NCBI GenBank assembly: GCA_002104945.1
Contig: MCFH01000010.1
Coordinates: 124,001 to 188,000, forward strand
DNA length: 64,000 nucleotides
Source of the DNA: Piromyces finnis finn
Taxonomy: Eukaryota; Fungi; Neocallimastigomycota
Reading direction: 5' to 3'
In this document: positions 7,772 to 59,804 of the stretch, in pieces
Layout of the letters: each line of letters starts with the position of its first letter
Position numbering within the stretch: position 1 is the stretch's first letter
The notes under the pieces: generated by a model
Database searches by the model: none
What the model saw: only the letters and a program-made list of their open reading frames with translations
Told to the model about the DNA's origin: nothing
Made by a program: the position numbers and the translations under genes

Positions 7772-10069
7772 AGTTTTCATGGTGTTACACCTTCTTTAAC
7801 CTATTAATTGAATTAAAAAGTATTATCCTTTATTAAATAATTGTTCCAATTAAACATTTTATTTTATATATTATTGTGAAGTTTATATAAAAAGGATTAA
7901 ATTATTTTTATTTATTTTGAATAGATTTATTGTTTATTCATAATATACATATTATATATAGGTAAAAAAATGTTCCAAATTCTAAATTTTTATCATTATT
8001 GCTGCTTCAGAATTATGAATCATTTTGGATAAAATATAAAAAAATAATAAAAGGTTTATAAAGTTTTAAGCATAAAAATATCATGTATTATTTTTTTTTT
8101 CCTTTTTAAATTTAGTTTTCCCTATGTTTCTTTTTCAAAGATGATAATTATACATCCTTATAATAAATATTGGTATTTTAATTGTGTGACACTTTATTTA
8201 TGAATGAAATTATTCATGCTATATTGATCGAATAAATTTATTCTTCAATATATAACAATCATTTCATTTTAGTGGTTAATTTTTATTTTGTAAAATAAAA
8301 TGTTTTAAATAATTAATTCGTCATTTATCTTTTTTTTTTTTTCTTTTTAAAAAAAATTACCTTTGTTGTTATAGCGTCATAATGTTAATCATCGACTCCT
8401 TTTTTTTTTTATATATATAATTTAAACAACAAACTAACAAACATGAAGAAAAAAAATATGAAAACTTCTTACTAATCAAATATGGAAATAATTATTTTTT
8501 ATTTATGATTATTTATATATTTATAATATATTAATGATACATTAAATGAATTGAATTATAATTTAATATCATTATATTTTAATATATTAAATACATTATG
8601 TAATAAAACAAATAGTTATCAATATATATATGGAAATTTTTTGAAATGTTTTTTTATCTAATAAATATTCATATGATAGATTTATGATTTTTTTATAAAG
8701 TATTCTATATTAATTGTTATAACAAAAAAAAGATAGAGATGGTAATATAATAAAGTAAAAAAAGAAATAGTTAAATGTATACTAAGTAATATTAACTTTT
8801 ATAGAGATACTCTTTTAGTTTTAATAATGATAAATAATATTTAATAATGAATCAATAATTTATTTATCTTTAGTTTCTATTATCAAATAACTATACATTT
8901 TGATAATGGTAAAAAATTAATTTTATGTCATGATTGTATAAATTAATTTTTAATTAAATCAAAATTAAATAAGCAAGAAAAATTGTTTAAAATTATAAAA
9001 TACTAGTTTTTTTTAAAAGAAAAAGATATGAAAATAAATATATTTTTCTTTATTAAAACAAATAATAATAGTATATACTAACTGCTTTCTTTTTTTTTTT
9101 AAAAACAAGCATAATTACTATTGGCAATTTGTAGATTTAAAAAAAAAAGATTAAGCCGTTTTAATTTAATTATCCTCCATAAAAAAATATTTTTTGATAA
9201 TAATACTTAATTTAAATTATCCTCATTTTTTAATTTGACTTTAATATTATGTTTAATTAATATTTAATTTATTCTGAATATTATGAAAAGGATAGATTAA
9301 AAATTTAAATTTATTTTTGGATATCACTATAATAATAATTTAATATTAAATTGATTTTAATTCATTAGCTAAAACTATATATTTTATTCAATTGATCTAA
9401 TACATATTAGTATATATAACATATATAACACATTAAACTCTGTTATTGGATATATATTTCAAAGACACGTTGCACAAAATAAATTAAACTAAATTAAATT
9501 AAAAAATAAAAAAATTTCTTTTTTTTTTGTTTTATTAAAAGAAGTAGCATTATTTTTAAAACAAAGTTAAAATAAGGCAGTATAGTATTATTAAGTAAAT
9601 GCTAAAGGAAAGAAAAAAAAGGTAAAATTTATCAAGAAGCTTATTTCAGCTTATTCTGTTCATTTTATTTTACTTTTTTTTTTTAAATAATAAAGAAAAT
9701 AATTGAATCATTATTTTTTTTGATAAATAGTAGTAATAAAAGAAAGTATTATACTCTTTTCACATAAAACAATTTTATTTCATTAATGGCTTAATTAATT
9801 ATATTACAAATTATTTTCTATTTCTTCTTATGTAGTACTTTTTTCATTATTTTCTTTTTGAAGATGTTTAAAAGAGAATTTTAATTTTATTATATATTAT
9901 GGTTTGAAACTTTTTTTAGTAAATTTTAGATAAAATATTATTTATTAATAAAGTTTTATTTTGGAAAAGAATGTTAATGAGAAAGTGTTTCAAATAATTA
10001 TTATTTAATAATACTTAATAAAAAAATAATTAATTAATAATAAAGCTTAGCACAAATAATCTAATAATC

Positions 10070-10208
<139 letters not shown>

Positions 10209-12101
10209 TAATAGTAATTTAATCCTATATTATTATAACTTTTAAACAAAATTTATACTATTTTATATATTTTTTTATATAGCAATCATTTTTAATAGTA
10301 ATGAAAAAGCTGTATAGTAAAAAAAAAATAGTGATTAATGACATATAATGAAACCATTATTCTCTATTTTCTTTATGTAGTAATTCTTCAATTCAACTAC
10401 TCTATAAATTAATATTTATAATTCTCCTTAATTACATTAATCTTTTTTTTTTATTAATAAAATAGAAACAAAATCTTAAAATGAAATTAAATAATTTAAA
10501 AAAGGTAATACTATTAAATTATAGGATTGGTAAACATTTTGATTTTTTAATAAAATGTTTTCATAAAAAGATATCTAGATTTTTTTAAATTTAAAAAATT
10601 AAATTTTATATTTAAATACTCCTTTTCTTTACTATTTGCATATGATAATGGTGATGAGTTTTTTTATATATATTTATCTGAAGACACTTTTTAATAAAAA
10701 AGTTTTTTTTTTTTTTTAAAAGAATGGCTACCTTAAAATTTTTTTTAAAGTTGTCATTCTTTTTTATATTAATATTTATATTAATAATTCATGTTATATT
10801 GTTCTTTTTGAAAAAATTTCTTTTCTTAATCATAGCCAGCCCATTAAAAGACAAAAAAACAAAAAATAAAATAAATAATTAAAAATAATGAATTTGTACT
10901 ATTTATTTTCTTGTAATACATGATTTAAATAGTAATATATTAAAATTGATTTATTTATATGTTGATAAAATTTGTATTACTGACATATAAATTAATATAT
11001 TTAAATCAACTGTTTTAATAACAACAATAAATAGTCTAAATATAGAAAATATAAATTATAGTATATATTATCAGCTTAATATAATATATTAACATACTAT
11101 ATTAAGTATTAATTTATTATTAATTAATAAAGTTCTTAGTATATTAACCTTTTTAAATTTAATATATAAATTAATTAACTAAATTATTAATGAATAATAT
11201 AACCTTATTTATTAATATTTTTATAATGTAAACTTTAATTAATAATGAAATGTTAAAAATATTTATTTTTTATTTATATGAAGAATAAATAAAACTAAAA
11301 TTAAATAGTCAAAAATGTTAATATATAGTTTAATATATCATTAAATTATCTTTTATATTACTAAGCATTTATTTTAATAAATCTATACTATATATTAATA
11401 TTTATGTAAAATATATTTACTATTAAATTTTTTAAAAGAATAGGATTTCTTTTTAATTCTATATATTTTATTATATATTTTGTATTAACATATAATAAAT
11501 GATGACCGCATATATTTTAATTAACATTTTAGTTTTCCATATATTATCTTATTAATTTTATATTAATTTTATTTATTAAATTTAGTCTATTTAAAACAAG
11601 AAATTCAACAACACAACAACATAAAATTTCTTTTATTAATTTTTAAAAATCCTATATAAACATTTAATTTCACCTTTTTAAAATTTTAAACAAAAAAAAG
11701 AAAGTTTTTTTAATAAAAAAAAAATTTTTTTAAAAAAAAGTAAAAATAGTGAATTTAAAATTCTTTATAAAAAATCTTTATATAGGTAAAAAATAAATAT
11801 GCTATATGCTAATTTAAATTTCATTACTGTATTAAAACTATAGTATAATATAAAGAAGTAGTAAGAATAATAAAATTTTAATACATTTTTTATATAAAAT
11901 ATATTATAGATAAAATAGTATTACAATAATACTATATTAATCTCAAAAAACAGGAAGTTTTAAATAGCACTATTAAAAAAAAAAAAGAAGAAATAAATAG
12001 CAATTTTAAAACAAGAATTATTTCTATCTTTTTTTTTTTTTAAAAAAAAGTTATAAAATTAATAAAATAAGAAATAAATAATATTCAACTTTACATACAA
12101 A

Positions 12102-13091
12102 ATGACTAAAACAGGAAACTCAGCCGATTTAATAAATAATTTATTATTAAATTTAGATAATTTAATAATTAATAAAGAAAACAATGATCTAGAAAATATT
12201 AAAGAAGTTGGTAACAGTATACAAGATCAATTAGAATCTTTAAAAAACGAAACCGAAAAAATAACAAGTCAATATACCCAAAATAATATAAAATCAAAAA
12301 GTAAAAAGATACCACCACCAATTATTACAGGTAAATATCGCAAACGTTCACAATTCCAAACGATTGATGATATGTTATTAGAATTAAATAATGCTTCTAT
12401 TCAAACTTATGGTGGCAATAAAACTCCAAAAAGTGGTAAAGGAAGAAAAATTCCAGATTCTTTTATAGATCCACGTCGTTATTCTGACCCATATAAATAC
12501 ACTATTTTATCTACTTTAGATGAAACTGAAGGAGGAGAAGAGGAAGAAGATAATTTAAATAATCCTCAAACACCAAAAACATCTATTCCTTATTACAGTA
12601 GAAAGAAGGAATACAAGAATATTAATGGAGGTTATATGATTCAATACTCATCTCCAAATACTCCTCGTGGTTTAAGAAATCGTTCATATTCCCAACCTGA
12701 ACGTTATTCTTCAGCAACAAAAAATATATTATCTTCATCACAATTTGAAAGTTCTTTATATAGTATGAAGCCAAATTCTGGTAAAACATCAATGGAATAC
12801 CTTAATAGAATTAAAAACAGTGTAAACAATGAAAAAATGAATAAAAATAGTGACGTTTTAGTTAAACCACCAAGAACATCTTCAATGAGTAATTATGGAA
12901 ATTATAAAAAAACTATGAATAAAACTGAAGAATATTCAGGTAGTGATATTTCTGATTCCGATCAAAGCTTAGAACCAAATTATTATTCATATAATTCTGG
13001 AGAAGTACATTTATCTGAAAAGAAAGGATATTTGGCTTTAGAAAATAAATCATCCTTTCACTCAGATATAACTTTGGTTAATGAAGAATAA
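12102..13091 (+). CDS. Intronless hypothetical protein, 329 aa (N-terminal coiled-coil-like segment, S/P/N-rich disordered remainder)
   Basis: A 990-bp ATG-to-TAA ORF in DNA where random ORFs are short, with higher GC than its flanks. No domain was recognised. Confidence 0.7.
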   Translation: MTKTGNSADLINNLLLNLDNLIINKENNDLENIKEVGNSIQDQLESLKNETEKITSQYTQNNIKSKSKKIPPPIITGKYRKRSQFQTIDDMLLELNNASIQTYGGNKTPKSGKGRKIPDSFIDPRRYSDPYKYTILSTLDETEGGEEEEDNLNNPQTPKTSIPYYSRKKEYKNINGGYMIQYSSPNTPRGLRNRSYSQPERYSSATKNILSSSQFESSLYSMKPNSGKTSMEYLNRIKNSVNNEKMNKNSDVLVKPPRTSSMSNYGNYKKTMNKTEEYSGSDISDSDQSLEPNYYSYNSGEVHLSEKKGYLALENKSSFHSDITLVNEE

Positions 13092-13879
13092 TTATTAAAC
13101 AAAAATTAACTTTTGTAAAAAAACACTATTTTTCTTTAAAAGTAAAGAAAAGAAAATAAAAATATAAAATTAATAGAATAATCAATTTCATCTTAATCTT
13201 TTAGTATTTTAAATGATAAAATACATTAAAGGTGATATTGATAATGTTAAGATTATTAAAAAAAAAAAAAAACGAAAAAAGGAAATTAAAAAAGAAAGAA
13301 AAGAAAATTAAATATATGTTTTGAATTTTCTTATGGAAAATCGTAATGTCATAATATATATTTAAAAATAAGTTTACTGAATCATTTCTTTTTTATTTTT
13401 TATATTTTTCTATTTTTTTTTTTTAAAATATTTATTTATTTATTTATTTAATTTAGAAACATTATTAACTTAAAATAACTATTAATAATTTTTTTTGTAA
13501 TTATATTTATAATAATAAAAATTAACGAAATAAACACTTAGTTAATTCGTAAGGCAAATCATTTTTATTATTTTACCTTAATAAGGTTAAATATAATAAT
13601 GATATAGGGAATTTTAAATTTTTATTATTATTATTTATTTATTTTTTTTTTAAAAAAAGTTTTAATAAAAATTCCTCATGTGTAAATATTAAAAAAAAAA
13701 AAAAAAAAGGCAACTTCTAATATATATTTAAAACGACAACAAAAACAAGTAACAATAGCAAAAAAATAAATATAACAATAAAAATAATAAAAACATATAA
13801 AACAAGATATTTTTTTTATTTTTATATTTTATTTTACAAATTGTTCATTTTTTAATAATCCTTTTGATAATAATACACA

Positions 13880-40358: not shown

Positions 40359-43199
40359 TTTGGACAATGCCAAAACTATCATTAGTAGCTCTATGAAGCT
40401 ACTTTTTGATAGGTTTAGTAAGACACCTAACGTAATCAAGAGCGCCGACGTTGTTGTTCTGTCAATGAAGAATAACAAGGCTCCAGGTCCCGATGGTATC
40501 CCAATTGAATTTTTCAAAGCTTTCTTTTGTAACGAAGAACTGGAGAAAGAACATAAGTCTGCTGGAAATTGTCTTAAATTAATTTTTAATAAAATCTGGA
40601 ATGGTTCCTTTCCTTTGAATTGGAACTCTGCTTCCATTGTTTCTATTCCAAAGAAAGGCGATCTTTCAGACTGTAATAATTATCGTGGTATTTCTCTCAT
40701 CAATGTAGGTCTTAAAATTATTTCAAAAATTATAACTAATAGAATTTCAAAGTATGCTCTTTCTCATAATTTTATAAGACCTGAGCAATTTGGTTTTCGC
40801 AATAAAGAAGAATGTATTAGCTTATTTGTTTCCATTAGAGAAATCTGTCAAAGAAGAAAATTTAAAGGAAAAGCCACTTATGTCGCCTTTCTAGACCTTA
40901 AAAAAGCATACGACTCAGTTCCTATTTTTAATATCCTTACAAAGTTATATAAATTAGGTATACGTGGTAAATGTTTTGATTTTCTCAATAATCTCTACTC
41001 TACCTCTAAAGCTCGTGCACGTTTCTTGGATATGCTTTCCAATGAATTCCCTATAAACCGTGGTGTAAGACAAGGATGTCCTCTTTCTCCTATACTGTTT
41101 AACCTCTTTATCAATGATATTTTAAATAAATGTGAAAGGCTTGGAGTTAGCTTAGGTAATAAACGCTGTTGTGGTGGCCTTTTCGCTGATGACATTGTTT
41201 TGATTGCTCCTAGTAAGAAGAACCTTCAAAAGATGCTCAATCTAGTCCTTGATTGGGCTAATTTAAATGAAATGTCTTTTGGAATAAATAAATGTGCAAC
41301 TATTGTTGTTAAACCTATCAACTTTAATAGATCCCCTAGTTATGTCGACCCAACATTTTACATCGGTATGTACTCGATTCCAAAGGTTTCTTGCTATACT
41401 TATCTTGGAATCCCATTCGACGAAGATCTTTCTTTGACTCCTATTCTGTCCAATATGTACAAAAAAGTTCAGAAATCTTTATTCTCTTTTAAGAACTTCC
41501 TCACCAACAATTGTGTTCCTATTGGCTTAAAAAACATAGTAATTCATTCTTATATTTTAAGCAAAGTCTCTTATTATGCTCCTTTGCTTGGTTCCAACAA
41601 AAATAGAACTAGAAGAGTCCAATCTCTTATCAATACTGCTGTTTTATGGAGTGTCAATAGCTTTCACAATAAAAGTTTTAATAACAAAGATTTTGTTTTT
41701 GAACGAAATTCATTTATTAGTCTGTATGCTCTTACAAGAGATATGAAGATCCCTACCCTTTCAGGTATTTGTGCTGCGCAACAAGTGAAATGCTTTGTTA
41801 AATGGAGAAAATCAAATTGTATAATTAAAGATCTCGTCCGATCTATTCCTCCCATGTCTCATTACTCTTGGGCCAAAGAATCTTGTTCACTACATAAGAA
41901 GCTTATGAAAATAAATATTAAAAGTACTAAAGATATTAGAGAATATTATTGGAATAATAGTAGCCTAAATAATGGAAGTAAAGCCCTCAGATATACTAAC
42001 AACAAATTCCTTAATTCAAATCGCCTAATGCATATCGGTCTCAACAAACCTCACTTAAATTTAGGAATTACCTGGATTATTCGTATTCGATGCGGTTATG
42101 AAAATACTACCCGAATTGCTATTGCCAGTAATAGAGTTACTCCTGACTGCCCTCGTGTCTGTCCATGTTGCGGATATGACGAACAATCTTTTTACCATTG
42201 GATATTAGAATGTTCTGCATTCTCTGAATACAGAGCTTCTTCACTTAGCTTTCTTGACGATCTTTTTACCCTTTTTTACAATAAATATAAGAATCAATTC
42301 ATCACATACTTACTCCCCGAAACGGAAGTAAGAAAAACAATTTATAACTATATTTTTACGTTCCTTCTTGGTGGAACTTTAGCTTATGATGAGCTACAAA
42401 TCGATAAGGCGGAACAAAGACATTTGAATGAACAGCTTTACAGTTCATCGGGGTCTCATGTTCCATATGTAGAGGGTCTCGCGGCTTTTCTTACTAAAAC
42501 AATCCCTATCATTAGTAGCTCTATGAAGCTACTTTTTGATAGGTTTAGTAAGACACCTAACGTAATCAAGAGCGCCGACGTCGTACCGATATGGCAAAGG
42601 AACATTTCCAATGTTCCGTACACAGGGTTCAATGTTAGTATTTCCTCAAATTCGAATGAAAACATTATGAACTCATGGGAGAGTTTAGTGGACACCACAC
42701 TATCATACCTGATGTTACTTCTTTTTTTTATTTCATTTAATTTATTAGGTAGGGACCAATCCCACACAGTACAAATTGCAGAGTTCATTGAACTTTTATG
42801 CAACTTAAATAATTATTTTATATTTTTTTATATTTATATTTTTATTTATATATATTTTATTATTTTTATTTATTACTTATTATATCAATATCAATATGTA
42901 TTATCACCTAATATTATGTAATATCACTAATTAAATAAGTAAATAAATAAAAGACGTGTATTCTCTTCCTAGTCTAAAAAAAAAAAAAAAAAAAAAAATG
43001 GGAAGGTTTTATAAGATGTTTAAAAATTACACTTCCTCAATCTTTAAATGTCATCCTTCAACTTCCTTTACCTCAATTAAAAGAAGTTTTAACAAAGGTT
43101 CCAGATTTGAAGGATACACTTAAGAATCAAATTAAACAATTATCTAAAAGTCAACGTACCAGTAAAATTGAAAAAATCATGGAATTACTTAAAATGTAA
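40359..43199 (+). pseudogene. Orphan last exon of a symplekin/Pta1-family gene, split by a LINE (pieces 40359-40378 and 42999-43199)
   Basis: Removing 40379-42998 restores (V/I)[47 protein letters not shown]...*. This matches the symplekin C-terminal domain as recalled (human [34 protein letters not shown]). There is an AG acceptor at 40357-40358, and no upstream symplekin exons were found in the window. Confidence 0.82.
40379..42998 (+). mobile_element. 5'-truncated non-LTR retrotransposon (LINE family A): intact RT + CCHC knuckle, poly(A) tail, no endonuclease
   Basis: RT motifs KAPGPDG, YRGISL, EQFGFR, FLDLKKAYDSV, GVRQGCPLSPILFN, LFADD and YLG. Knuckle CPCCGYDEQSFYHWILEC. A23 at 42976-42998. 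The frame is open to 42921. Confidence 0.96.
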
Positions 43200-43400
43200 A
43201 AAAAAGAATTCATATTATATAAAAAAAATTATTTATTTATTTTTATATCATATATAACTAATATAGAAAAGTAAATAAATAAGAATTTTTTTAATTTTAT
43301 ATTTTTACTTTTTTCAATATATTTTTTTATTTATTAATGGATTTTATATATAAACTTTTTAAATTTTTCAATTTTTTTTTTTTAATTAAACTATACAATA

Positions 43401-43432
<32 letters not shown>

Positions 43433-43770
43433 TATATTTCATTATATTATTATAATTATAATTATATTTTAAACGAATACATAGTAATTTTTTCTCCACC
43501 ATACTTTTTTCTTTTATATATTTATATCAACAAAATCATTTCAAAAAAAAAAAAAAGTAAAATATTAAATAATATCTAATAATAATAATAATTTAAAATA
43601 ATTTCATATTAAATATATATATTTAATAAAAATAAAAAGACATTTTTCAAGAAATAAAAATAAATTTAATAAAATAATAAAATATAAAATCATATATTTA
43701 ATACTTCAACAACACTTATTAATTTCTTAAATCATAACTAAAAATTAATAACTAATTATTTATTTATTTA

Positions 43771-43775
<5 letters not shown>

Positions 43776-43862
<87 letters not shown>
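43776..43862. repeat. (AAT)17-(ATT)12 inverted microsatellite (perfect palindrome with 36-bp arms)
   Basis: The AAT tract switches directly to an ATT tract at aatatt (43824-43829). A smaller example lies at about 23615-23650. Confidence 0.9.
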
Positions 43863-44747
43863 TGAAATTATTTTTAAAATTTATCATATTATTATTACAA
43901 TTGTTTTTTTATTTGAATTATATAGTAAATCCTTGCTATTTTCTTTTTTACAAAATAAAGAGTAATACAAACAATTATAATCAGAAAAATTTTATAATTC
44001 TCATATCATTATTTCCCTTTTTTTTTTTAAAAAAAAAAAATAAAAATGAAGCAACATACAAAAAAAAATAATACTAATCGATAATTTACTTTATCTCCTT
44101 AATGAAATTTTCATTAAAAATATAATTATTATGTGTAATGTTTATTTATAATTAATAATTTTTTTATTTCAGGAAATTATTAAATACTTTTTTAATATTT
44201 TTGAAAGATTATAATAACCATTATTTTCATTTTTTCATAATTTTTTAACATTTTCTAATATTATGATTTCTACTATTATTTAAATATTTAAATTCTATTT
44301 TATAAAATATGAGAAGAAAAAAATGAAATAAAAAAGTTATTACAAATACATTAATTTTCATTTATCTTTTTTTTAACCAATAAAAATTATCTAAATTTGT
44401 ATATAAAATATATTATGTATTTTCCTTTTCTGTATGTTCTATTTCTAATAATAATGTATACAATTAATTAATAATTGAATTTATAAGTTTAAGAATATGT
44501 AAGAAAAAAAAAAAAGGCTCATCTTAAATTATGGCGTTCAAAAAAAATATATATTATTTTATAATATTTATAATAATAATAATAATAATAGTACTATTTA
44601 ATAATAGTGATATATTTATTCTATTCTATTCATATATAAATTATCTTTTTTTTTCTAAACAGGAATGAATGAATAAAACTAAGGATTGAATTATTTATAA
44701 TTCTATTTTATTATTGTAAAAGGTAAAATTCTTTTCTTTATTCAACT

Positions 44748-44798
<51 letters not shown>

Positions 44799-45617
44799 TT
44801 AATAGAGTTATTTAATTAAATAAAAAAAAATGGTAATAATGTATTACCTTCTATTAAATAAATTGAACCATATATTAATTTAATATATTACCATTTTTTT
44901 AAAAAAATAATTTTTGTTAATACCAAGGATGAAAAAAAAAAATTAATTAAACTTAATATATATATTAAAAAGTTGTAATGAAAAATAGGTAGAGTTTTTA
45001 TTTTTTATAAAAAGTTTATAACTTTAAAAGATCTATTTATTAAATCATTCTATAATTATTAATGTTTTATTTCTTATAAAGTTATTATTCTAATCTATAT
45101 TAATTGGATATTAATTGGCTGTAAATTTTGCTAAAATAATGTTGTCCTAACTTTTTATATTTAAAATATAATTTTTTTTTTGATTTGGATATTTATTCTT
45201 TAATTATAATAACACAAAAATAAAAAAATGAAAAATGAAAGATTTTTTTTTTTTTTTTTGATTAAATATATCTTTTATTTATATTTTTCTAAATAATGGT
45301 TTAAAATTCTTATTAAAAATAAAAAAAATGATTAATAAAATAACTTTATAAAATAAATATTATTATTATAGATAAAATTAAGTAATATTAAATGACATTA
45401 AAATAAATAATTGATATTAAAACCTTCAATATGTATATAATTCTATATTGCTAATAATTTATTAAAATAATTAAAAGAAAGAGATTATATATACTTTTAT
45501 TAATAGATAAAAAATAATTAAAATATACTACTAATATGATCATATTTTTCTTTATATAATAAAAATCTGATATATTGTAGAATATGATTAACACTATTAA
45601 TTCGCAAGATATACTCT

Positions 45618-48600
45618 TTATTCTTCCTTAGTTTCATTTTCCTTGGTTGGTTTGTATTTTTTAAAAATTTGTATTTTTCTATTTTGGTATTTCATTTTTT
45701 TTTTAAAAGCTAAAAATTCAGTCACCTCAGATACATTAGCGATAGCTTTTTCAGAATCAGGGATAGTAATAATATCTGGAATGGTCATGTTACTTATATC
45801 TCTTTTCAATGCTCTTTCTTTAATACTATCATTGGTTCTAACAAATGGTAAATAATAAGATAAAGTATAGATAATGGTGGCAATTCTACAAAAGTTAGTG
45901 GAAAGGATTTGATAAAATATTGGAAATACAACGCAAACTTCAAAAGGTAATTTAATTTTTGGGTTATTTCTTGCGATGATTAAATTAAAGATATCTAAGC
46001 TAATGAGTGAAATGGCAATGCAAATGCAAACAATCATTAGTGCTGGTAAATAAGAATGCATTAAAAACATAAATACTAATAGCACAAGAAAGGCGTAATC
46101 GTTTAAGATGGAAATAATAAAATCAAAACAAAATAATTTAGCTGTAAGAGTAGCTCGATGATTCCAACGACATTTATGGAGCAAACAATAAAGGAATTTA
46201 AAAAGAAAACGATGACGTGCTGGTTCCCAATAAGCAACACGTTGACGTGACAATGAATATTGACCACAATCGCAATCTTTCATATTTTCTCCTAGAAAAT
46301 GTGGAAGATATTCTTTTAAGTGGAAATAGCATCTTGGTACAAGAGTATCTATGATAACATGTGCTATTTCAATTTTATAATTACCATCATGTAATTCATT
46401 TGGATCACAAAATTGAGGTTTACCATACATGGTATGAAGACGAAGACCAAGTTGTAAATCATCTCCACGGAAAACTGTATCATGACGATAAAGACACTCC
46501 AATAGGAATGGGGTACTCCAAGTACTCATAGCCCCACTTGGGAATACTACTGTACCAATATCCTTATGTACCTTTTTACTGTACATTGAAATAATATATT
46601 CAAGATTTTGAAATGCTGAAACTATACCTTCACGACGATTACTTGCAATAATAGGATAGGCTAATGCTTTTACATTTTGATCCTTTTTAAAGTAGGATAA
46701 AATTTCTTCTTCAACCCAATTTTCCGGAATTAATACATCATCATCGATAATTGAAATGTACTTGATATCAATACCCGACCAAAACAAATTATTTATTAGA
46801 CAAAATTGAGCTAAAGTTTTAGAACCTTCATTTAAATTTGCATAAATAATATTTAATCCACAATAATTAGGATGTGTACATCTAAAGTGATGACTATAAC
46901 GGTCTACAATTTCCTTCATTTTTTGTTTTTCACTTGGAGAGGAACCATTTTCAGCTATGAAAATTGACATTGGCGTAGTAATTTTCAATAAATTTTCCAA
47001 AGTTGCTGGCAACACATCTGAACTATTATGACATACAATAAGAAAAGCATGATTAATACTTTTATACATGGATACAATTTTAGATTGTTTATTTTTATTT
47101 CCATGAACAATGTCAATTTCTATGACATTTCCTATTTCTTCATTTGGTATTCCGTCGTTACCCAAATTAATGTTGATGAATGAATTATTTGTGTCTGTGC
47201 TATTATGTTTGTTATAGTTAATACCCTTATCCCCATTCGAATCCCTATCATGAGTGGAATAGTTATTGGCACTATCTGAATTATTATTGAAAATGATTGT
47301 ATTATTGGATGCACTACTATTGTCATAAGTATCACTATATAGGGTAAAACCATCGTCTTCTTCATCATTAATAATGGTTGATGAACTATCCATTTCATTA
47401 TAAATAGCTAATGATTTCTTATTAAGAGAAGGCCATTTTACAAAAGGTGCGCCTAATAAAATCATAAAACTTTCTCTATTAAGTAAAAGCCAACATATAA
47501 TATTAAAGGTTATAAAGGGTATGCTGAAAGTTGCATAATTATTAATGATATAATTATATATTTTTCGACAGAGAACTTTGTAATAACTAAACTTTAGATT
47601 GGATCCAATTAAAAAATAGGATATTATAATCATGATCACAAGTTCAAATAAAGCAACCAACCAAAGCTTGAAAAAAGTAAAAGGAAAAAGTCTTGTTTTT
47701 TTATTGGAAAAAAAGTACCAAACAAAAGGATTAATGAAAACACCGTATAAAAGATGAATAAAGATGATTATGAATGATATTAAGAAAGCATTTGTAAAAA
47801 TAGAGTAGATACTGAATAAATTAATATTACGATTAGATTTAATAATTTCATCTCGCCTTTTTTTAATAAATATTTTCAAAGAGGCATAATCCTTTTCTAT
47901 ATTTGACATTTTATTTATTTGATTATTATTCTTATCAAGGATAGGTTCCAGTGAACCGTCCCATTTTAAATCTGCATGAACCATATTGAAAATACTATCC
48001 ATTCTATCTAAAAATAAGGTAGTTCCAAAAAAATTATTTACTATATAATTTATATAATCTCTAGTGTTATGTTTTTCACTTGAATAATTCATTAAATTAT
48101 CAAATATTGGTCTTCTCGTATCTTGTTTTCCTTTTCCTATAAAACGAAATTCCTCAAATTCTGTATAGATATAATTTTTACTCCAATCATTTAATGGTGA
48201 AGAAAAATATCCTTCATGATAATTCCATTGGTTTTTTGTCTATCGAGTTAAGAAAAAAAAATTTTAAATATTAATTGGTATGTTATCTTTTTTTTTTTTT
48301 TTAAATAATAACCATTTTATATCTATCTATCTATATATACTATATATAATATTTCATAAAAGATATAACTACTTACTTTATCATAATATAAAAAATAATT
48401 GGTTCCATTATATAAATAGCCATGCTGATTATTTAAAATGTAATCTATAGTCATTATTTTTAAAAATGAATCATAATTAAAGTTTTTTTTTAATTGGTCC
48501 AAGGAATTAAAATTTTCAGTCATATAGAATAATTTAGCAAGATCATTTTTGGAATGAAAAGTTTCAGGAGATTCAATTCCTTGATACCAATAATTTGCAT

Positions 48601-49896
48601 AACTATCTATATTTTCATTAATTAACAGTTTTGGGAATGTTTCAATTAAATCAAATTCACCATTGTATTTCATTGGAGAAAAGTGACTATTCATTTGGCC
48701 ATACATTTCAGTAGTGTTAAATTCATTTTTAAAATAATCAATATTTGGATTTTCTTTGATTAAATAAAAACCTATAGGGTTATTATTAAAATAAACTCTG
48801 GTAAATCCCACTTGAGCAGATGGTACATCCATAACATTACAGATATCGGTATTATGACGAAGCATAAGATTATCAGAAGAAGTAGATACTAATTGAATAC
48901 TAGTCTTATTAAACAGATTATAATATAATTTATCTGTGGGAGATGTTTGTGGTTGGGTTAAACTGTACTCTTTATAGGAGAGAAAATAAGAAGTTTTTTT
49001 AGGGTTATGATTCTTTTGAAAATAATATTTATTGGAATAGTAGGTAGTAAAATAAATATCGGTATTTATATTATCTGCCAATGCATTTATTTCCAATAAT
49101 AAATTTTCAAACTTTCCCACCGCATATGGAGTAATAATAGTAGCACTTACTTTTAATGATGGACTATTTTGTGAATTGGTGTAATGAGCATTTTCTAAAT
49201 CCTTATAGCCGGAAATGTCACCATTTAAATAAATTGTTGATATAAAATTATCAGAAAACAATTCTGAATACTTGTTTTGATTTCTGGTTATTTGGTTTCC
49301 TACTACCGTAGAAAGATCTGGATGATTATAAATTGAATCATTTCTATTGAAAAATTCATTTAACGGTTGGTTAGAATTCATATTCGATGGTTGAGCCAAT
49401 CTTTTAAAATTTTCTTCTTTTATGATTTTATTTTTATCAGTGATACTATAAGAAACATAACTATATGTTTCCTTTTTATCTAATTCATATTCTCCTCTCC
49501 AAATAGGATAATCTGTATCATCTAAATCTACTATTTTATTATTAATTTTCAGACCTACTTTTGTTGTATTTCTATTCACCGGGAACACTACACTAAATTG
49601 ATGAACCTCTAATTTTTTATATAACAAATATAACATTTATATAATATATATGTTATAATGTTATAAGTCAATAGGTAAAAATATATTATAAATGTATATT
49701 ATTATTATGATATTATGATATGATTATTAATAACAAAATTTAACAGCTAAAAAAATTATAATTATAATATAAATAAAAATTAAAATATATATATATATAT
49801 ATTCTTTAAATACTAACTTGAATAAACATTTGTGAAAAGAATTATTAATTCAAATAAATAAGTAACCCTATATATAAAATTCTTCTTTTTCAACAT
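45618..49896 (-). CDS. Signal peptide + CotH-like kinase domain + multi-TM processive GT2 glycosyltransferase fusion, about 1310 aa; exons 49896-49818, 49608-48377, 48239-45618
   Basis: Exon 1 is MLKKKNFIYRVTYLFELIILFTNVYS with donor gttagt (phase 1). Exon 2 is CotH-like (DVPSAQVGFTRVYFNNNPIGFYLIKEN; NYDSFLKIMTIDYILNNQHGYLYNGTNYFLYYDK) with donor gtaagt (phase 0). The acceptor at 48241-48240 gives TKNQWNY..., open and in frame with the 824-aa ORF (147 nt to ATG 48092). GT2 motifs: IIDDDV, FPSGAMSTW, RGDDLQLG and RQRVAYW, with flanking TM helices. Confidence 0.85.
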
Positions 49897-50649
49897 TTTT
49901 ATTTTACTAATAATAATGTATATAAAGACTATTAAGTAAGTATATCAAGTATATTATTATTTAGTGTTAATACTATAAAGTATTGCTATTTTTAAATAAA
50001 TAAAAAAAACAAAAACACTTGATAAACCTTTTTATTTTTCTTTATTTTTTATATAGGATTTCCAACCAATAAACCTTGAGAAATAAATAAATATATATTT
50101 ATTTTATTTAAATCATCCATTGAATAATTATTCCATATTTAAATGGGTATTTAAATATATAAAAAATATTAAAATTAAAAATAAATTAAATTTATGAATT
50201 TTTTTTTTTAATACCAAAAAAATTTTTTTTAATAGTAATACTAATGATATTATTTAATATTAAGCAAAAATAAAAGGTAATATTATTTTAATAAGAAATA
50301 TCATATTTTACTATTTTATATTCATCCTTTTAATATTACAATTTTATTTTACTTTTTTTTAAAAAAAGCCTTTTTTTTCCTTATTGAATAATCTTCTTTT
50401 TTTTGATAGCAAACTTTTGGGTTGGTTACCTGACCAATCAAACAAAAAAAAATTTTTAATATTCCTTCTTTTGTATTTTTATAACTCTTGGCATATTTTT
50501 TTTTCTTTTTGGATGCTTTTATTTCATTTATAAATATATTTTTATATTGACGCTCTTTAACATCGTTTTATACTTTTAATATTTTTTATTAGTAAAGCAA
50601 TTCAATTTCATATTTAAATATTTTTTTTTAAAAAAAATCTTATTTAAAG
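49897..50649. promoter_or_regulatory. Putative bidirectional promoter (753 bp) between the CotH-GT2 and LRR-GH genes
   Basis: Divergent ATGs at 49896 (minus) and 50650 (plus). CCAAT words occur at 50066-50070 and 50434-50438, the second inside a short inverted repeat. Function is inferred from geometry only. Confidence 0.45.
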
Positions 50650-51811
50650 ATGAATATAAAATTTTTAATAGCGGTTTTTCTTTTTCTATTCCTGTTGCCT
50701 TTTTCTGTGGATAGTTTAAATTCCTGTCGAAAACTGAAAAATCACTTGTGTCCTTCATGCGGTAAAGAAGACTATCAATGTGAAACCAATGAAAAGGGTG
50801 AGATAGATAGATTATATGTAATATGAAACAATACAATGCTTTAAACTATTTTTATCAAGTTTTATAGCTATATTATTAATATAATATAATTTGATAATTT
50901 GTATATATTCATAAAAATTAATGTATAATAAATATATATTATAGACATATTAATAATCAAGATTTTAGTGGTGGTATTCCAGATAAGATTTTCGAAATAA
51001 CTTCTATAACATCATTGTAAATAATACTTTTTTTTTCTATTTGAAAAACTTATTAAAATAACCTGTACTAACTTTTTATTATTTATAAAAATCAAATGTG
51101 TCTATGTCTTTAAAAATAATAAATTTATATATATATATATTTATAGATATTTACTAAATGACAAAATTTTTACACTTTCGAATCAAATTAGTAATCTAAA
51201 AAATCTTTTAAGACTGTAAAATTTATACCTTTTAATATAAAATATATCACTTAAAACACTTTTTTTTTTATGAAAAAATTTAATTTAATAATAATACTAA
51301 AAATTATAATATTTTAAATTCACCTTAACTATTTTATTTTATATGATTAATACAGAGATGTTAGAAAAAATAATTTGAAAACTATTCCTTCAACTATTAG
51401 AGATCTTAGTAAACTTAAATACTTGTAATTTTTTAAAAATTTTAAAAAGAATTCATATAAATAAGCTTTTATATTTTTTTTAAATAAAAAAGGCCAAAAA
51501 AATTAATTTATATATTTTTACTAACTTCTTATTTCCATTTATCTATAGAAAACTAAGTAATAATCCTATAACAGAACTTCCAGAAGAAATTGGAAATTTA
51601 AAGGAACTTAGATCATTGTAAATAAAAAATATAAAAGGATTAAAAAGAAAACTTTTTTTTGATATTAATTTAAATTCCTCCCTTTTTTTTTAATTGATTT
51701 TTTATTTCTATACTAAGATATTTAACAAATTGTAAATTGAAAAAACTGCCATCGTCCATTACTCAACTTTCTAATCTACAAGATTTGTGAGTACTTCTAA
51801 AAATTAAAAGA

Positions 51812-51862
<51 letters not shown>

Positions 51863-54528
51863 AATAATTGTATTTTTTATATAAATTTTTATTTTAATTT
51901 AATAATAGAAAACTTGAAAATAATGAATTATCAGCTATTTCAGAAGAAATTAAAAATATTAGAAATAAAAAACAATTGTAAGAGTTATTAAAATATATTT
52001 AAATATGGTTATAAAAGTTAAAATAATAAATAATTCTTTATTTAACTTTTTTTTTCATAAAGAGTTTTAGATAACAAATCGATTGTTGAATCCTCAATTA
52101 CACATAATGAAACTGATTTTATGTAAGTTAATTTAAAATAAAATTATTAAAATGGTTTTAATTAAAAAAAAATATTGATATCACTATGAAAGTTAACTAA
52201 TATAGAATGAATCAATTTATTTATTAATAATATTAAAAAAATTTTAACAGGTCCTATAAAATAACTAGTTTGGTTAGAAAAAAAAATTTATCATTTTATA
52301 AGGATGAAGGCGTCTCTTATATTGCCAAAACTAATGGTAGATATCTTTCAGTATATGACGGCTCTACTTTCAAAGATATTTATATTCAAGGTGTAAATAT
52401 TGGATTAGGTTTACCAAATTATTTTCCCGAAGAAACTGGAATTGCTTATGATCAATATTATGATTGGTTTAATAAAATTGCGGAAATGAATGCTAATTCC
52501 ATTAGAGTTTATACCATACAATCACCTGAGTTCTATAAAGCCTTTTATAATTATAATAAAAACAATAAGCATAAACCAATCTATTTATTTCAGGGTACAT
52601 GGTATAATGAAGATCGTTGGTTAGAAACTCAAAATGCATTTGATTTAGAGCTACTTTCTAATCTTTATCAAGACACAAGAGACTTAATAGATATAATCCA
52701 TGGAAATTCAATTTTACCGAAATTGCCAGGAAGAGCATCAGGTATATATTCATTTGATATATCTCCTTGGTGTATTGGTTGGATTTTAGGTGTTGAATCG
52801 AGTAAACAATTTGTAAATACGACAAATATTTGTAATCCAGATAAAACTCATTATAAAGGGGAATACATTTCAGCCAATAATATACAGCCTTTTGAAGTTT
52901 TCTGGGCCATGACTGCTGATTATACAGTTTCCTACGAAATGACGAATTATAAAACTCAAAGACCTATTAGTTTCTCCAATTGGCTTACAGCCGATGTCAT
53001 GCGACATCCTAGTGAAACAATGGAAGATGAAGATACCGTTACACTAGATATTCAACGACTTACCCAAGAAGATGCCTTTAAATGTGGATTTTTCGCTTCT
53101 TATCATGTTTATCCGTATTATCCAAATTTTATGTGGACACAAAAAAATTATATTGAACATAAAAATGATGATGGCAAAATAGACCCGTACGAAGCGTATT
53201 TACAAGATTTGAAATCAGTTCATTTCGATAACATTCCCCTTCTTGTAGCAGAATTTGGAATACCATCTTCTCGTGGAATAACCCATCAAAATCCTATTAC
53301 CGGTTATAATCAAGGAAAAGTTGATGAAAAAACACAAGGACATATGCTTGTTGAAATGGCAAAAAGTATTAAAGCTAATAATTACACTGGTTGTTTAATT
53401 TTTTCATGGCAAGATGAATGGTTTAAGCGTACTTGGAATACTATGGATAATACAAATGAAACCAGAAGAGCGTATTGGGATGATGTTCAAACAAATGAAC
53501 AAAACTTTGGTATACTTGATTTTGTTTCCTATACCGATGACCATAAGATTATGATACTCGATGGCAAAACAGATGACTGGACCTCCAATGATAAATTTAC
53601 TGAAACAAGGAATATCAAGATGTCAGTTAAAAAGGATGCCGCCTATATTTATATTTTACTTGAAGCAAATACTATGGTTGATTTAACAAAGGATAGAGTA
53701 TTGATATCTTTTGATGTTACTCCGAAGTCCGGTTCTCACATCTATACCTCCCATGATGGTAAAGATATTTTTAATTTTTCCGAAGCTGTTGATTTTGTGC
53801 TTGAATTAAACGGACGAAATGATACAGAAATATTTACCCATGAATATTATGACAAGTTTGTCTATTCCTATTATCAGTATGAAGAAGTGAAAATCAAAGG
53901 ATTAAAGCCTGCCACTTCACGTAAAAGTTCAGTGTTTAATTCGATTAAACTTTTAAATGAAATAGAACTTCTTCTTCCTGATAGAAATGAAACGATCAAT
54001 ACACTCTATGATATTACTGGTAAGCTTTTATTTGGAAGTACGGATAAAGCATCTCCAGATTATTCAACAATATCGGATTTCTATTTAACCCCATCTATTG
54101 CTGAAATAAGAATTGCGTATGGTTTACTTAATTTTAGAGATCCATCATCTTTAGCAATTGAAGATGATTTCTATGCTCTTGATAAGAATGTTGATTTAGA
54201 AATAGATTCAATTAAAATAGGACTTACTGAAGGCAATAACACCATATTCAAAACCTTCTCATGGGATAAATGGGATACTGTTGCTTATCAAGAAAGGTTA
54301 AAAGATTCCTATTCTATTTTACAAGGTTATTTTGCAGAAGAAGAAAATTCCAATCATTCCTATAAGAAAATTATAATACTATCTATACTAATGATTATTA
54401 TACTATTGTTACTATTCTTACTATTTTTTTTTTCAAAAGAAAAAATATTATTAAAAAAAATATACAACCTTAAAGCAAAGCAAGACAAAAAAACAAAAAA
54501 ACAAAAAAATAGTCCAAATTTATTATGA
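50650..54528 (+). CDS. Signal peptide + Cys cap + LRR array + clan GH-A (TIM-barrel) glycoside hydrolase + C-terminal TM anchor; exons 50650-about 50800, about 50945/50962-51016, 51147-51215, 51356-51424, 51549-51617, 51718-51786, 51909-51977, 52063-52122, 52251-54528
   Basis: Exon 1 is MNIKFLIAVFLFLFLLPFSVDSLNSCRKLKNHLCPSCGKEDYQCETNEKG. Five 69-nt phase-2 LRR exons follow (e.g. KLSNNPITELPEEIGNLKELRSL) and splice in frame into the 752-aa ORF. GH motifs: IQGVNIG, MNANSIRVYT, WILGVE (acid/base), ASYHVYPYYP, LLVAEFG (nucleophile) and FSWQDEWFKRTWN. TM: IIILSILMIIILLLLFLLFFF. The exon 1/2 junction is ambiguous. Confidence 0.85.
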
Positions 54529-54967
54529 TATTAAATAATTTCAATATTTATTATTATTATTATTTTTAATTATCATAGAATATACTATATTATTATTATC
54601 TATAATTATTTATTATCCATTATTTATTATTTCTTATTATTTTCATTATCCTAGACTCTCAAACAGTATACTGGAAGTAAAATAAATACAATAAAATTAA
54701 TTATAAATTTGATTTTTTATATTTTATAAATAATACTAAAAAAATTATCTTTTTTTTTTTTTTTTTTTTTTTGTTTTGGTTTATTTTTATTAAATCTATT
54801 TTAAACTAATAATTATAATGCTAATAATAATAATAGCATTTACTGTAATGTCATATATATTTATTATATATATATTATATATTATACTATTTATTAATAC
54901 TATAAAGTATTATGTAACTACACTATAAAAAAAAAATTTAATTATTAGATTTTCCTTTTTTTTTTTA

Positions 54968-57900: not shown

Positions 57901-59804
57901 CAACCTTATTTGGGATGGAGACTTCCCCAGCTCTTGGAATGAATCTAGTATTGTTTCTATTCCTAAAAAGGGAGATTTGACAGATTGTGATAACTATCGA
58001 GGTATATCACTTATCAATAATGGTATTAAGTTGATTTCAAAAATTGTCACCACTAGAATCTCAGAATATGGTTTAAAGAATAATTTCATTAGACCTGAAC
58101 AATTTGGTTTTCGAAAAAAGGAAGAAAGTATCAGTCTTTTCATTTCAATCCAAGAAATATGCCGTAGACGTCAATTAGATAATAAAGAGACATATTTGGC
58201 CTTTTTAGATCTCAGGAAAGCATACGATTCAGTCCCAATCGGTAATATTCTCCATAAATTAGATTGTTTAGGAATCCGAGGTAAGAGTTTACAATTTATC
58301 AAAAATTTATATTTAACATCTAAGGCTAATGTCAAATTAGATGGACAATTCTCGAAATCTTTTGATGTGAAGAAAGGAGTCCGTCAGGGTTGCCCACTTT
58401 CTCCTATTCTCTTTAATCTCTTTATTAATGATATATTTAGAGAGTGCGAAGATCTAGGAGTCAGTTTAGGTGACACTCGATGCTGTGGTGGACTTTTTGC
58501 AGATGATATAGTTATTTGTGCTCAGGTTAGATGTTTTAATAAATGGAAAAACTCAAATTGTATTATCTCATACCTTGTCAATTACATTCCTAAATTTAGA
58601 AAATACACGTGGTGCAAATCAAGTAGGACACTTGATAAAAAATTAAAGAAGCATGGAGATGTTAAAACAGTTAAAAACTTTTATTGGAAAGATCTCAGAG
58701 GGAATTCAATCAAAACACAATATTATGATGATAATAAATTTATTGAAACTAAAGATTTTATCAAATTATGTTATGAGTACCCAGAGTTTGCCTATGACTT
58801 CTACTGGCTATTGAAAGCAAGAAGCGGATACAAGTTGGATGCTAGAGTTGCAAAAGCTGCTAAATTTGTTGATTCAGTTTGTCCTAACTACTGTCCATGT
58901 TGCAAGTGTAGTGTTCAAAGTATTAAGCATTGGTTATTAGATTGTCCAACATTTAGAGATATCCGTATTAAGCATTATGATTCCATAGTCCAGCTATTAA
59001 ATTTTTTCAGTCAACGTAATTCCAACAGTCCTATCAATAATAATGAAAATGTTAATATCAGTAGTGATAGCAATAATATTAATAGTAATAGTAACAATAG
59101 CCATAATAATAGTAACAATAATAATAATAACAATAGTAGTAGTAGAAATAATAATTTTAGTAATGATAGCAATAGTGAAGATAATAATTCTAATTTAGAT
59201 AGTTATTTAGTTAATAATAGTAATAATTCTAATAATCCGGTGAATATTAATGTGTATGATTATTCTAATGTGTGCAGTAAAATATTTAAATTCCTTCTTG
59301 GGGGAAGAAGTTTTAACAATATCAATTACAATTCAAGGGAATGGAAAGAACTTTGCAAGTATCAGATTCATACTGGCACTAACGAAGGAACACCATTCTT
59401 GACGGTAACCGCGGAACTTCTAACCAAAATCATGCCTTTTGCTATTGGCCAGCAATGGTCAATGTTCAAAAGGTTGAAGCAACATCCAAGAGCGTCAATG
59501 CTGAATAAATAGTAAGACAAGCCAGGAGGGCCAGCGGAACCAATGGAGATCATAATTTTGTCTCATGATAAAATTTTGATCTTTGGCTCCGTGTCCCATT
59601 GGAAGTCAAATACAATTATTATACTTTTGTATAATAGTGGCTTTCTTACTTTAATTAAAATTACTAGAATACATTATACCCAATTTTTATTCATTTGTGT
59701 TTATTTAAATATATTTTTTTTTTATTTTTTATTTTTTAATTTTTTATATTACATGTATTATAATTTTAATTAAATTAATAATAAAGTTTAAAATATTTGA
59801 TGCC

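Follow-up and report, generated by a model that had tools for sequence, protein, structure and literature searches.

Divergent Piromyces finnis genes for a CotH-like domain–GT2 synthase and a leucine-rich repeat–glycosidase-fold membrane protein: a tentative surface glycan module with a probable bacterial contribution

A 64,000-nucleotide stretch of contig MCFH01000010.1 of the anaerobic gut fungus Piromyces finnis (here, the window, to which all coordinates given without a locus handle refer) carries two divergent genes, A and B, which lie head-to-head and near-certainly encode two cell-surface membrane proteins. The product of gene A combines a predicted extracellular CotH-like domain with a synthase-type glycosyltransferase of family 2 (GT2), and that of gene B combines leucine-rich repeats (LRRs) with a membrane-anchored core of glycoside hydrolase (GH) fold, which appears to be of bacterial ancestry. 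The chance that the two form one synthesis-and-remodelling module for a surface glycan falls, in our estimate, just short of even. The strongest support for such a coupling comes from the partnership of this GH family with GT2 synthases in bacteria and from the recurrence of the adjacency in a second fungal genus, and its main weakness is the patchy linkage of the two genes.

Organization of the locus

Both genes assemble in frame with canonical GT-AG introns. Gene A occupies positions 45618-49896 of the minus strand in three exons and encodes a protein of 1310 amino acids (aa), our model being identical, letter for letter, to the annotated protein ORX54680.1 (P0121). Gene B occupies positions 50650-54528 of the plus strand in nine exons. 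The largest exons measure 2622 nucleotides (nt) in gene A and 2278 nt in gene B. The two ATG codons are separated by 753 bp of 15% GC content (49897..50649), which is short by the standard of the P. finnis genome and is presumed to be a shared promoter region; the whole window is strongly AT-rich (12 to 33% GC across 1-kb bins). Hydropathy analysis indicates a signal-like N-terminal segment and transmembrane (TM) segments in the products of both genes. A preliminary description of this DNA, prepared from the sequence alone, had reported two divergent genes 753 bp apart, with large exons of 2.6 and 2.3 kb and with a signal peptide and a membrane anchor in each product, and our models agree with it in all these respects.

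Shares of the sampled words of region 48000-53000 that were found in three probable RNA runs amount to 0.53, 0.45, and 0.34, the type of the runs being guessed and the paralogous copies being inseparable in them. Exons make up 0.58 of this region, and a share of 0.31 or 0.27 would be expected if just one of the genes were transcribed. Compared with this expectation, the observed shares suggest that both gene types are transcribed, the copy not being distinguished.

The GT2 synthase encoded by gene A

The GT2 domain of the gene A product (residues 835-1110; 46221..47048, minus strand) matches Pfam family PF13641 with an E value of 5e-12, and no Pfam chitin-synthase model was matched by this product in the Pfam scan. 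The residues of the CHNSS, (E/D)NGS (AENGS in gene A), DDD, GDD, and Q-R-x-x-x-W motifs are invariant in 50 members of the gene A GT2 family. At the site of the acceptor-binding motif, gene A has QRVAYW (Q1103, R1104, W1108), which is one residue longer than the canonical Q(Q/R)xRW. The GT-A domain carries the D and DxD motifs, as in processive membrane GT2 synthases.

A structural model of residues 560-1310 (mean predicted local distance difference test score, pLDDT, 84; predicted template modelling score, pTM, 0.82) places TM helices on both sides of the GT domain and predicts an overall fold like that of solved synthases. Its closest matches in the PDB are the hyaluronan synthases of Chlorella virus and Xenopus (E 7e-10, TM-score by target 0.53-0.58), followed by chitin synthases and then by BcsA. 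The region comprising GT2 and TM helices has its best structural matches in CvHAS, XlHAS1, ScChs1, and PsChs1; it has D and DxD motifs, as well as a GDD-type and a Q-R...W motif. The gene A product is just 12-15% identical to these hyaluronan synthases (HAS) and chitin synthases (CHS) and differs from them by the longer QRxxxW motif, by its extracellular CotH-like domain, and by a long N/S/D-rich linker. Near-certainly, it is a synthase-type GT2 that crosses the membrane several times and belongs with the synthases of hyaluronan, chitin, and cellulose; the GT2 synthase assignment of the preliminary description is borne out by Pfam and by the processive-synthase fold and motifs.

The first exon of gene A (49818..49896) comprises 26 codons plus 1 nt and encodes, from the start codon on, a signal-like N-terminus (MLKKKNF...; the model equals P0121), while the second (48377..49608), which is 99% identical to that of the paralogue P0288, encodes the N-terminal ectodomain and the first part of the CotH-like domain. 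The third (45618..48239) encodes the end of this domain, TM helices, the linker, GT2, and a C-terminal TM bundle, up to the stop codon. Three TM helices (residues 576-690; 47481..47825), supported by hydropathy and by the helices of the model, separate the ectodomain from GT2. They would place the CotH-like domain outside the cell and GT2 in the cytosol, which is the topology that such synthases need. Further TM helices (residues about 1132-1236; 45843..46157), predicted by hydropathy and the model, form a synthase-like channel region. The low-complexity N/S/D-rich linker between the TM helices and GT2 (47106-47423) is length-variable and 49 residues shorter than in P0288.

The gene A family is small, with only 376 relatives in a HMMER scan of 1.84 billion representatives. 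The closest of them are encoded by Neocallimastigomycota (65-83% identity), and the next ones, at 37-41% identity, by the chytrids Powellomyces, Geranomyces, Rhizophlyctis, Borealophlyctis, and Caulochytrium and by Capsaspora. This distribution of nearest relatives argues that the GT2 is native and not bacterial; on these sequence comparisons, the small family to which it belongs is near-certainly indigenous to zoosporic fungi and holozoans.

The CotH-like ectodomain

The CotH-like domain corresponds to residues about 230-569 of the gene A product (47844..49000, minus strand, with intron 48240-48376 inside). Pfam does not detect CotH in the window copy, taken in pieces or whole, even at E 10. 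It does detect CotH (PF08757) in the 99%-identical paralogue P0288, with a score of 42.4 bits (gathering cutoff 23.8; E 8e-11), the match covering residues 230-569 and model positions 12-320 of 322. CotH is also matched in N. californiae and metagenomic orthologues (P0123, 1e-10; P0131, 1e-15), and a tblastn search joins the ectodomain of gene A to a stand-alone CotH gene of P. finnis (L006) with E 1e-15. The window copy differs from P0288 by a deletion of two residues in a conserved CotH segment. The CotH assignment made in the preliminary description stands, therefore, by way of the paralogue, the orthologues, and tblastn, although the window copy itself falls below Pfam detection.

The CotH kinase family (PF08757) includes the Bacillus spore-coat kinase and the CotH invasins of Mucorales. 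The paralogue and orthologues of gene A are homologous to this family over the whole Pfam model and differ from it by the fusion to a GT2 synthase. In the alignment, WYFISTDFHFTFG of stand-alone CotH is replaced by WNYHEGYFSSPLNDW in all CotH-GT2 fusion members, and the fusions have a family-invariant motif, WNYHEGYF, unlike the aligned stand-alone CotH. This motif change makes the kinase competence of the CotH-like domain of the fusions doubtful, as far as it can be judged by sequence comparison. No solved CotH structure could be aligned by sequence to the gene A domain, either as a single sequence or as a profile. Near-certainly, an extracellular CotH-like domain was added in front of the native GT2 in anaerobic fungi.

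Stand-alone CotH genes, one of them encoding a C-terminal TM segment, directly adjoin CotH-GT2 paralogues in P. finnis (L006 5032-6765, minus strand, beside 8158-12292) and N. californiae (L004 809-6019 beside 10001-13857), which hints at an origin of the fusion from neighbouring genes. Dockerin-bearing CotH proteins occur in anaerobic fungi as well (PMC11291939).

The glycosidase-fold protein encoded by gene B

Exon 1 of gene B (50650..50813) encodes a signal peptide and a Cys-rich LRR cap. It is followed by the LRR exons (50945/50962-51016, 51147-51215, 51356-51424, 51549-51617, 51718-51786, 51909-51977, and 52063-52122), five consecutive middle ones of which are exactly 69 nt long, in phase 2, and encode one LRR of 23 aa apiece. 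The LRR motif LxxLxLxxNxL has four exact matches in gene B, and six to seven 23-aa units can be distinguished. In the paralogue P0289, which over the LRR exons aligned differs from gene B by just one substitution, Pfam detects LRR_14 (9e-18) and LRR_8 (4e-14), and LRR families are also matched in Anaeromyces robustus orthologues, including P0004. The LRRs noticed earlier in gene B are thereby confirmed. A long run of ATT/TTA trinucleotides (51815-51862) lies within the intron between LRR exons 6 and 7.

The ninth exon (52251..54528) encodes the GH-A domain, beta-sandwich domains, a TM anchor, and a short basic tail. The anchor (residues 904-938; 54352..54456), indicated by hydropathy, is absent from bacterial homologues, and the gene B product is near-certainly a type I membrane protein.

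The last exon encodes 758 residues without any sequence match in Pfam, NCBIfam, or PDB (phmmer), and the GH family of this product is without a name in these resources. Its homologues number in the thousands. The non-fungal ones are proteins of 700-780 aa that are 36-51% identical to it (42-51% in the case of Bacillota proteins) and come from Lachnospiraceae, Roseburia, Ruminococcus, Clostridium, Paenibacillus, and Bacillus. The bacterial homologues are widely labelled as 'family 2 glycosyl transferase', a label that, for the Bacillota GH-A-fold protein, is almost certainly wrong.

An AlphaFold model of the core, based on 107 sequences, has a pLDDT of 93.6 and a pTM of 0.90, and its Foldseek match has an E value of 3e-13. 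The 430 N-terminal residues of the core are predicted to form a (beta/alpha)8 barrel of clan GH-A (52291..53541). The barrel matches that of a GH157 endo-beta-1,3-glucanase (Z 33.6, root-mean-square deviation 2.3 A over 318 residues, 13-15% identity) and those of many GH2 enzymes (Z about 28), and fold matches in Swiss-Prot include GH5, Gas/GH72, and GH17 enzymes. Residues R85, E182, H285, Y287, E334, and W386 are invariant in the 107 sequences. In the predicted secondary structure, E182 follows strand 174-179 and E334 lies within strand 330-335, which would put them at the C-terminal ends of beta-strands 4 and 7 as the candidate acid/base (codon 52795-52797) and the candidate nucleophile (codon 53251-53253), respectively. 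The predicted positions of R85 (b2), H285 and Y287 (b6), and W386 (b8) fit the signature of clan GH-A, and the residue preceding the candidate acid/base is Val or Ile, not the Asn usual in this clan. The barrel and the invariant residues at clan GH-A sites in the model make it very likely that the core is enzymatically active, either as a retaining glycosidase or as a transglycosylase. The assignment of a glycoside hydrolase to gene B in the preliminary description is supported at the level of fold, with both catalytic glutamates conserved.

Bacterial origin of the GH core

In a maximum-likelihood tree, seven fungal GH sequences are monophyletic (support of 100 in the Shimodaira–Hasegawa-like approximate likelihood-ratio test, SH-aLRT) and nested in a clade dominated by Lachnospiraceae (100), which points to a single transfer from a donor resembling rumen Lachnospiraceae. 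On this phylogeny, the GH core of gene B appears, near-certainly, to be a horizontal acquisition captured once. Its bacterial homologues begin with a signal or lipoprotein-like leader and lack a TM segment at the C-terminus. The signal peptide, the Cys cap, the LRR exons, and the TM anchor are additions in the fungal proteins and are kept both in A. robustus and on fungal contigs from metagenomes. Gene B is a clean case of the domestication of a horizontally acquired bacterial domain, the leader of which was swapped for a signal peptide and one-repeat-per-exon LRRs and which gained a TM anchor. A metagenome scan for further fungal GH loci with flanks yielded bacterial relatives only, at no more than 43% identity.

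The genomic company of the GH family in bacteria was analyzed in 82 Bacillota loci, 80 of them from contigs representing one genome per species and two looked up directly. A PgaC/IcaA-like GT2 gene lies within 10 kb of the GH-A-like gene in 68 of these loci, and a gene encoding a HEAT-repeat protein directly adjoins this GT2 gene in 54. The module comprising the HEAT-repeat protein, the PgaC/IcaA-like GT2, and a GH-A-fold protein of ~720 aa has more than 590 species-level matches (e.g., L001 10001-14876; L001, L019-L088). No experimental description of it was found in our literature search, and it is apparently uncharacterised.

Eight of the 82 loci are of a second type, which is marked by an exosortase, a membrane protein related to PTPS, and an XrtG-type GT2. 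The clade to which the fungal sequences belong contains eleven rumen or gut entries (ten of Lachnospiraceae and one of Oscillospiraceae), and four of the eight loci are among these. The remaining four comprise L002, which has a Lachnospiraceae label in the homologue search alone and also lies within that clade, Clostridium paraputrificum, a Desulfosporosinus, and L012, a 3.8-kb contig with only the PTPS-related protein. In rumen Lachnospiraceae loci (L002 318-11487; L011, L013, L016, L018, and L020), the GH-A-like gene occurs with genes for an EpsH-like exosortase, a PTPS-related membrane protein, and an XrtG-type GT2, as well as with small PTPS genes. Elsewhere, structural relatives of the GH core are fused to arrays of tetratricopeptide repeats or to polysaccharide deacetylase.

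The presence of GT2 in 68 of the 82 bacterial loci is evidence, independent of the adjacency in fungi, that this GH family works alongside a synthase-type GT2. The occurrence of the bacterial GH relatives in operons with GT2 might also suggest that a synthase-plus-hydrolase operon was transferred whole into the fungus. However, the gene A GT2 is only 22% identical to the bacterial GT2 partners of the GH family, its nearest named relatives are those of anaerobic fungi, chytrids, and Capsaspora, and it is present in genera in which no GH was found. A co-transfer of both genes from one bacterial operon was therefore rejected, as extremely improbable.

Evidence for and against a common function

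On the reading in which the two products act together, a borrowed GH-A enzyme would have gained a new partner in the fungus, a native synthase of unrelated origin, with a short promoter region common to both genes. The gene A product would polymerise a beta-linked glycan from a cytosolic uridine diphosphate (UDP)-sugar and extrude the chain, and the tethered GH-A ectodomain of the gene B product would trim, release, or transglycosylate this chain at the surface. The partners or the polymer might be held in place by the CotH-like and LRR ectodomains, for which docking or sensing roles are pure inference. In its full form, this is an inter-kingdom chimeric module, in which a glycosidase of Bacillota GT2 operons was captured, capped with LRRs, anchored by a TM segment, and re-paired via a short bidirectional promoter with an unrelated native CotH-HAS/CHS-like synthase making an unknown surface glycan. 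We put this full form forward tentatively, at a likelihood clearly below even.

In A. robustus, the next gene called upstream of the LRR-GH gene P0004 (locus L007) is a GT2-family gene for a protein of 1628 aa, the C-terminal 180 residues of which are 67% identical to gene A (the comparison covering the last 698 nt); this protein was not among the matches in the protein search for gene A relatives. LINE (long interspersed nuclear element) copies excepted, the neighbourhood of P0004 has no other synteny with the window. The adjacency, which would count against the proposed pairing if it were confined to P. finnis, is thus found in a second genus, with an orientation that differs and with several copies of both genes unpaired. 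Eight fungal metagenomic contigs with the GH gene (L171-L178) are too short to reach a neighbouring gene.

Several observations weigh against the coupling. The A. robustus genes are arranged in tandem, 9.3 kb apart, with a LINE between them, and the second LRR-GH gene of this species (L008) has no GT2 gene nearby. No GH gene was found within 10 kb of the CotH-GT2 paralogues of A. robustus (L003, L169), N. californiae (L004/L005), and P. finnis (L006). No GH homologue was found among the named proteins of N. californiae or Orpinomyces, where CotH-GT2 is present, which indicates that the synthase does not need an enzyme of the gene B type. Owing to the low identity of the gene A GT2 to the bacterial partner GT2s, a match between the substrate of the GH and the product of the synthase is not implied. 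Moreover, genomes of the P. finnis type are very rich in GH genes, so that a GT gene beside a GH gene is not rare a priori.

The unpaired copies, the lack of GH among the named N. californiae and Orpinomyces proteins, the unconserved orientation, the LINE copies that flank or separate the genes, and the different origin of the fungal GT2 and the bacterial partner GT2s are all consistent with genes that are adjacent without a shared job. The GH-A enzyme would then act on beta-glucan or chitin of the fungal wall, in the manner of glycosylphosphatidylinositol (GPI)-anchored GH72/GH17 enzymes, on the exopolysaccharide of rumen Lachnospiraceae, or on a plant glycan, and the adjacency would result from insertion or rearrangement in a LINE-rich region. 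The Gas/GH72 and GH17 wall enzymes among the fold matches fit the first of these substrates. Such an explanation is quite possible, at somewhat less than an even chance. It must, however, accept as a notable coincidence that a family that is specifically a partner of GT2 synthases in bacteria landed by chance beside a synthase-type GT2, and it does not account for an adjacency that recurs in a second genus with nothing else shared nearby. Furthermore, the usual biomass-degrading enzymes of anaerobic fungi are secreted, unlike a TM-anchored, LRR-capped enzyme without dockerin.

The synthase-plus-hydrolase module proposed in the preliminary description is therefore supported in part: the architectures, the bacterial GT2 partnership, and the A. 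robustus adjacency speak for it, whereas the adjacency is not general and the orientation is not conserved. That description also knew of no report of such an arrangement, and our literature search (CotH-GT2, GH157, exosortase G/XrtG) gave none describing the pair.

Apart from chitin, the glycans at the cell surface of anaerobic gut fungi have hardly been explored, and the pair provides concrete candidates for an unknown surface polymer, namely a member of a synthase-type GT2 family common to chytrids and Capsaspora, without known product, and a tethered glycosidase. If the coupling is true, it would demonstrate that a partnership of synthase and hydrolase can be reassembled in another kingdom out of parts that are not orthologous. 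As a by-product, the analysis exposes the widespread and unnamed Bacillota module described above, the glycosidase-fold member of which is mislabelled.

Two observations concern the neighbourhoods of the other fungal copies. The LRR, CotH, GH, and GT2 modules recur together in neighbourhoods of the A. robustus/P. finnis type; for instance, a gene with LRR and CotH lies about 8 kb downstream of the second A. robustus LRR-GH gene (L008 22365-23976). The A. robustus CotH-GT2 gene P0279 is followed, about 10 kb downstream, by a polysaccharide deacetylase gene (CE4, Polysacc_deac_1; L169 25002-25155); this is possibly due to chance and would fit a polymer of the N-acetylglucosamine type.

Segmental duplication and the state of the window copy

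The pair is part of a duplicated 12-kb block (42992..54966), which aligns with 96.5-99.5% identity to L170 2230-14334, about 152 kb upstream on MCFH01000010.1, and contains an orphan 3' piece of a symplekin gene, gene A, the intergenic region, and gene B. Clustering at 90% groups P0121 and the gene B product with one further P. finnis protein apiece (ORX54641.1 of 1359 aa and ORX54642.1 of 954 aa, respectively, with consecutive accessions), and the genes of these two proteins are head-to-head, 732 bp apart, beside a Symplekin_C gene. Since the window block has an orphan symplekin end and L170 the Symplekin_C gene, the window pair would near-certainly be the younger, derived copy. As the duplication shows, the two genes travel together in one block. 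As both P. finnis pairs come from one block duplication, the second is not independent evidence of coupling, which adds to the points listed against it.

A LINE reverse-transcriptase open reading frame (ORF) (40360..42918, plus strand; Pfam RVT_1, E 1e-37) abuts the left edge of the block, and another one (57977..59509, plus strand; RVT_1, E 2e-28), a related copy of which lies between the genes in A. robustus L007, is located to the right of it. Their presence on both sides, on the same strand, suggests a LINE-associated duplication or rearrangement.

Both genes are open in both copies, with ratios of nonsynonymous to synonymous differences (pN/pS) of 0.16 for gene A and 0.41 for gene B, calculated from very few changes. 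In the window copy of gene B, G is replaced by A at position 50814, which changes the intron-1 donor from GTATGT in the paralogue to ATATGT, and read-through of this intron meets a stop after four codons. The sole canonical in-frame alternative is a hypothetical splice with donor GTGAGA at 50798 and acceptor at 50961, which drops 11 residues. Because of the donor mutation, the exon 1/2 junction is 50797/50962 in our window model and 50813/50945 in the annotated paralogue. The public annotation of the window gene B is a protein of 759 aa that starts inside exon 8/9 and is devoid of the signal peptide and LRRs; the loss of the donor probably explains this shortened model. Window gene B may thus be compromised at intron 1, to judge from the splice-site letters.

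It is conceivable that the window pair is a decaying young duplicate, that gene B in it no longer yields a signal-peptide–LRR–GH protein, and that it is the parent copy, located about 152 kb upstream, that works. In addition to the ruined donor and the shortened public model, the orphan symplekin end, the 2-aa deletion in the conserved CotH segment and the shorter linker of gene A, and the pN/pS of gene B would fit such a decay. Nevertheless, all coding exons are still open, the alternative splice removes just 11 residues, the substitutions are too few for a decisive pN/pS, and gene A is intact and annotated at full length. We consider decay of the window pair rather unlikely.

Comparison with known systems

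In bacteria, synthase-dependent loci for exopolysaccharides may also encode a cognate glycosidase, as do those of BcsA/BcsZ (cellulose), PgaC/PgaB (poly-N-acetylglucosamine), and PssC/PssZ of Listeria. As in the P. finnis pair, a gene for a membrane GT2 of processive type adjoins in these loci a gene for an extracytoplasmic protein of glycosidase fold. The P. finnis pair differs in being eukaryotic and having a divergent promoter rather than an operon, in the assignment of gene B to an unclassified family of clan GH-A and not to GH8 or GH153, in the different evolutionary origins of its genes, and in the additional CotH-like and LRR ectodomains. It also has no cyclic di-GMP module or outer-membrane parts.

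In the Bacillota module of HEAT-repeat protein, PgaC-like GT2, and GH-A-like protein, the last of these, which is likewise paired with GT2, represents the direct ancestor family of the gene B core, with which it has its invariant residues and its beta-sandwich tail in common. In comparison with this module, gene B has gained a C-terminal TM segment and LRRs, gene A encodes a GT2 of a different lineage, and neither a HEAT nor an exosortase partner was detected in the P. finnis window.

Among fungi, the co-regulated, five-gene galactosaminogalactan cluster of Aspergillus, which is responsible for an adhesive exopolysaccharide, combines a synthase with Sph3/GH135, Ega3/GH114, and Agd3. It resembles the P. 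finnis pair in joining a polymer synthase with membrane-anchored glycoside hydrolases in a fungus. However, the P. finnis proteins belong to other enzyme families and share no sequence ancestry with those of the cluster, in which neither LRR nor CotH is present.

Apart from the features described above, and unrelated to the gene pair, the left end of the window contains an ORF with a bromodomain (620-1351; PF00439, E 2e-24).

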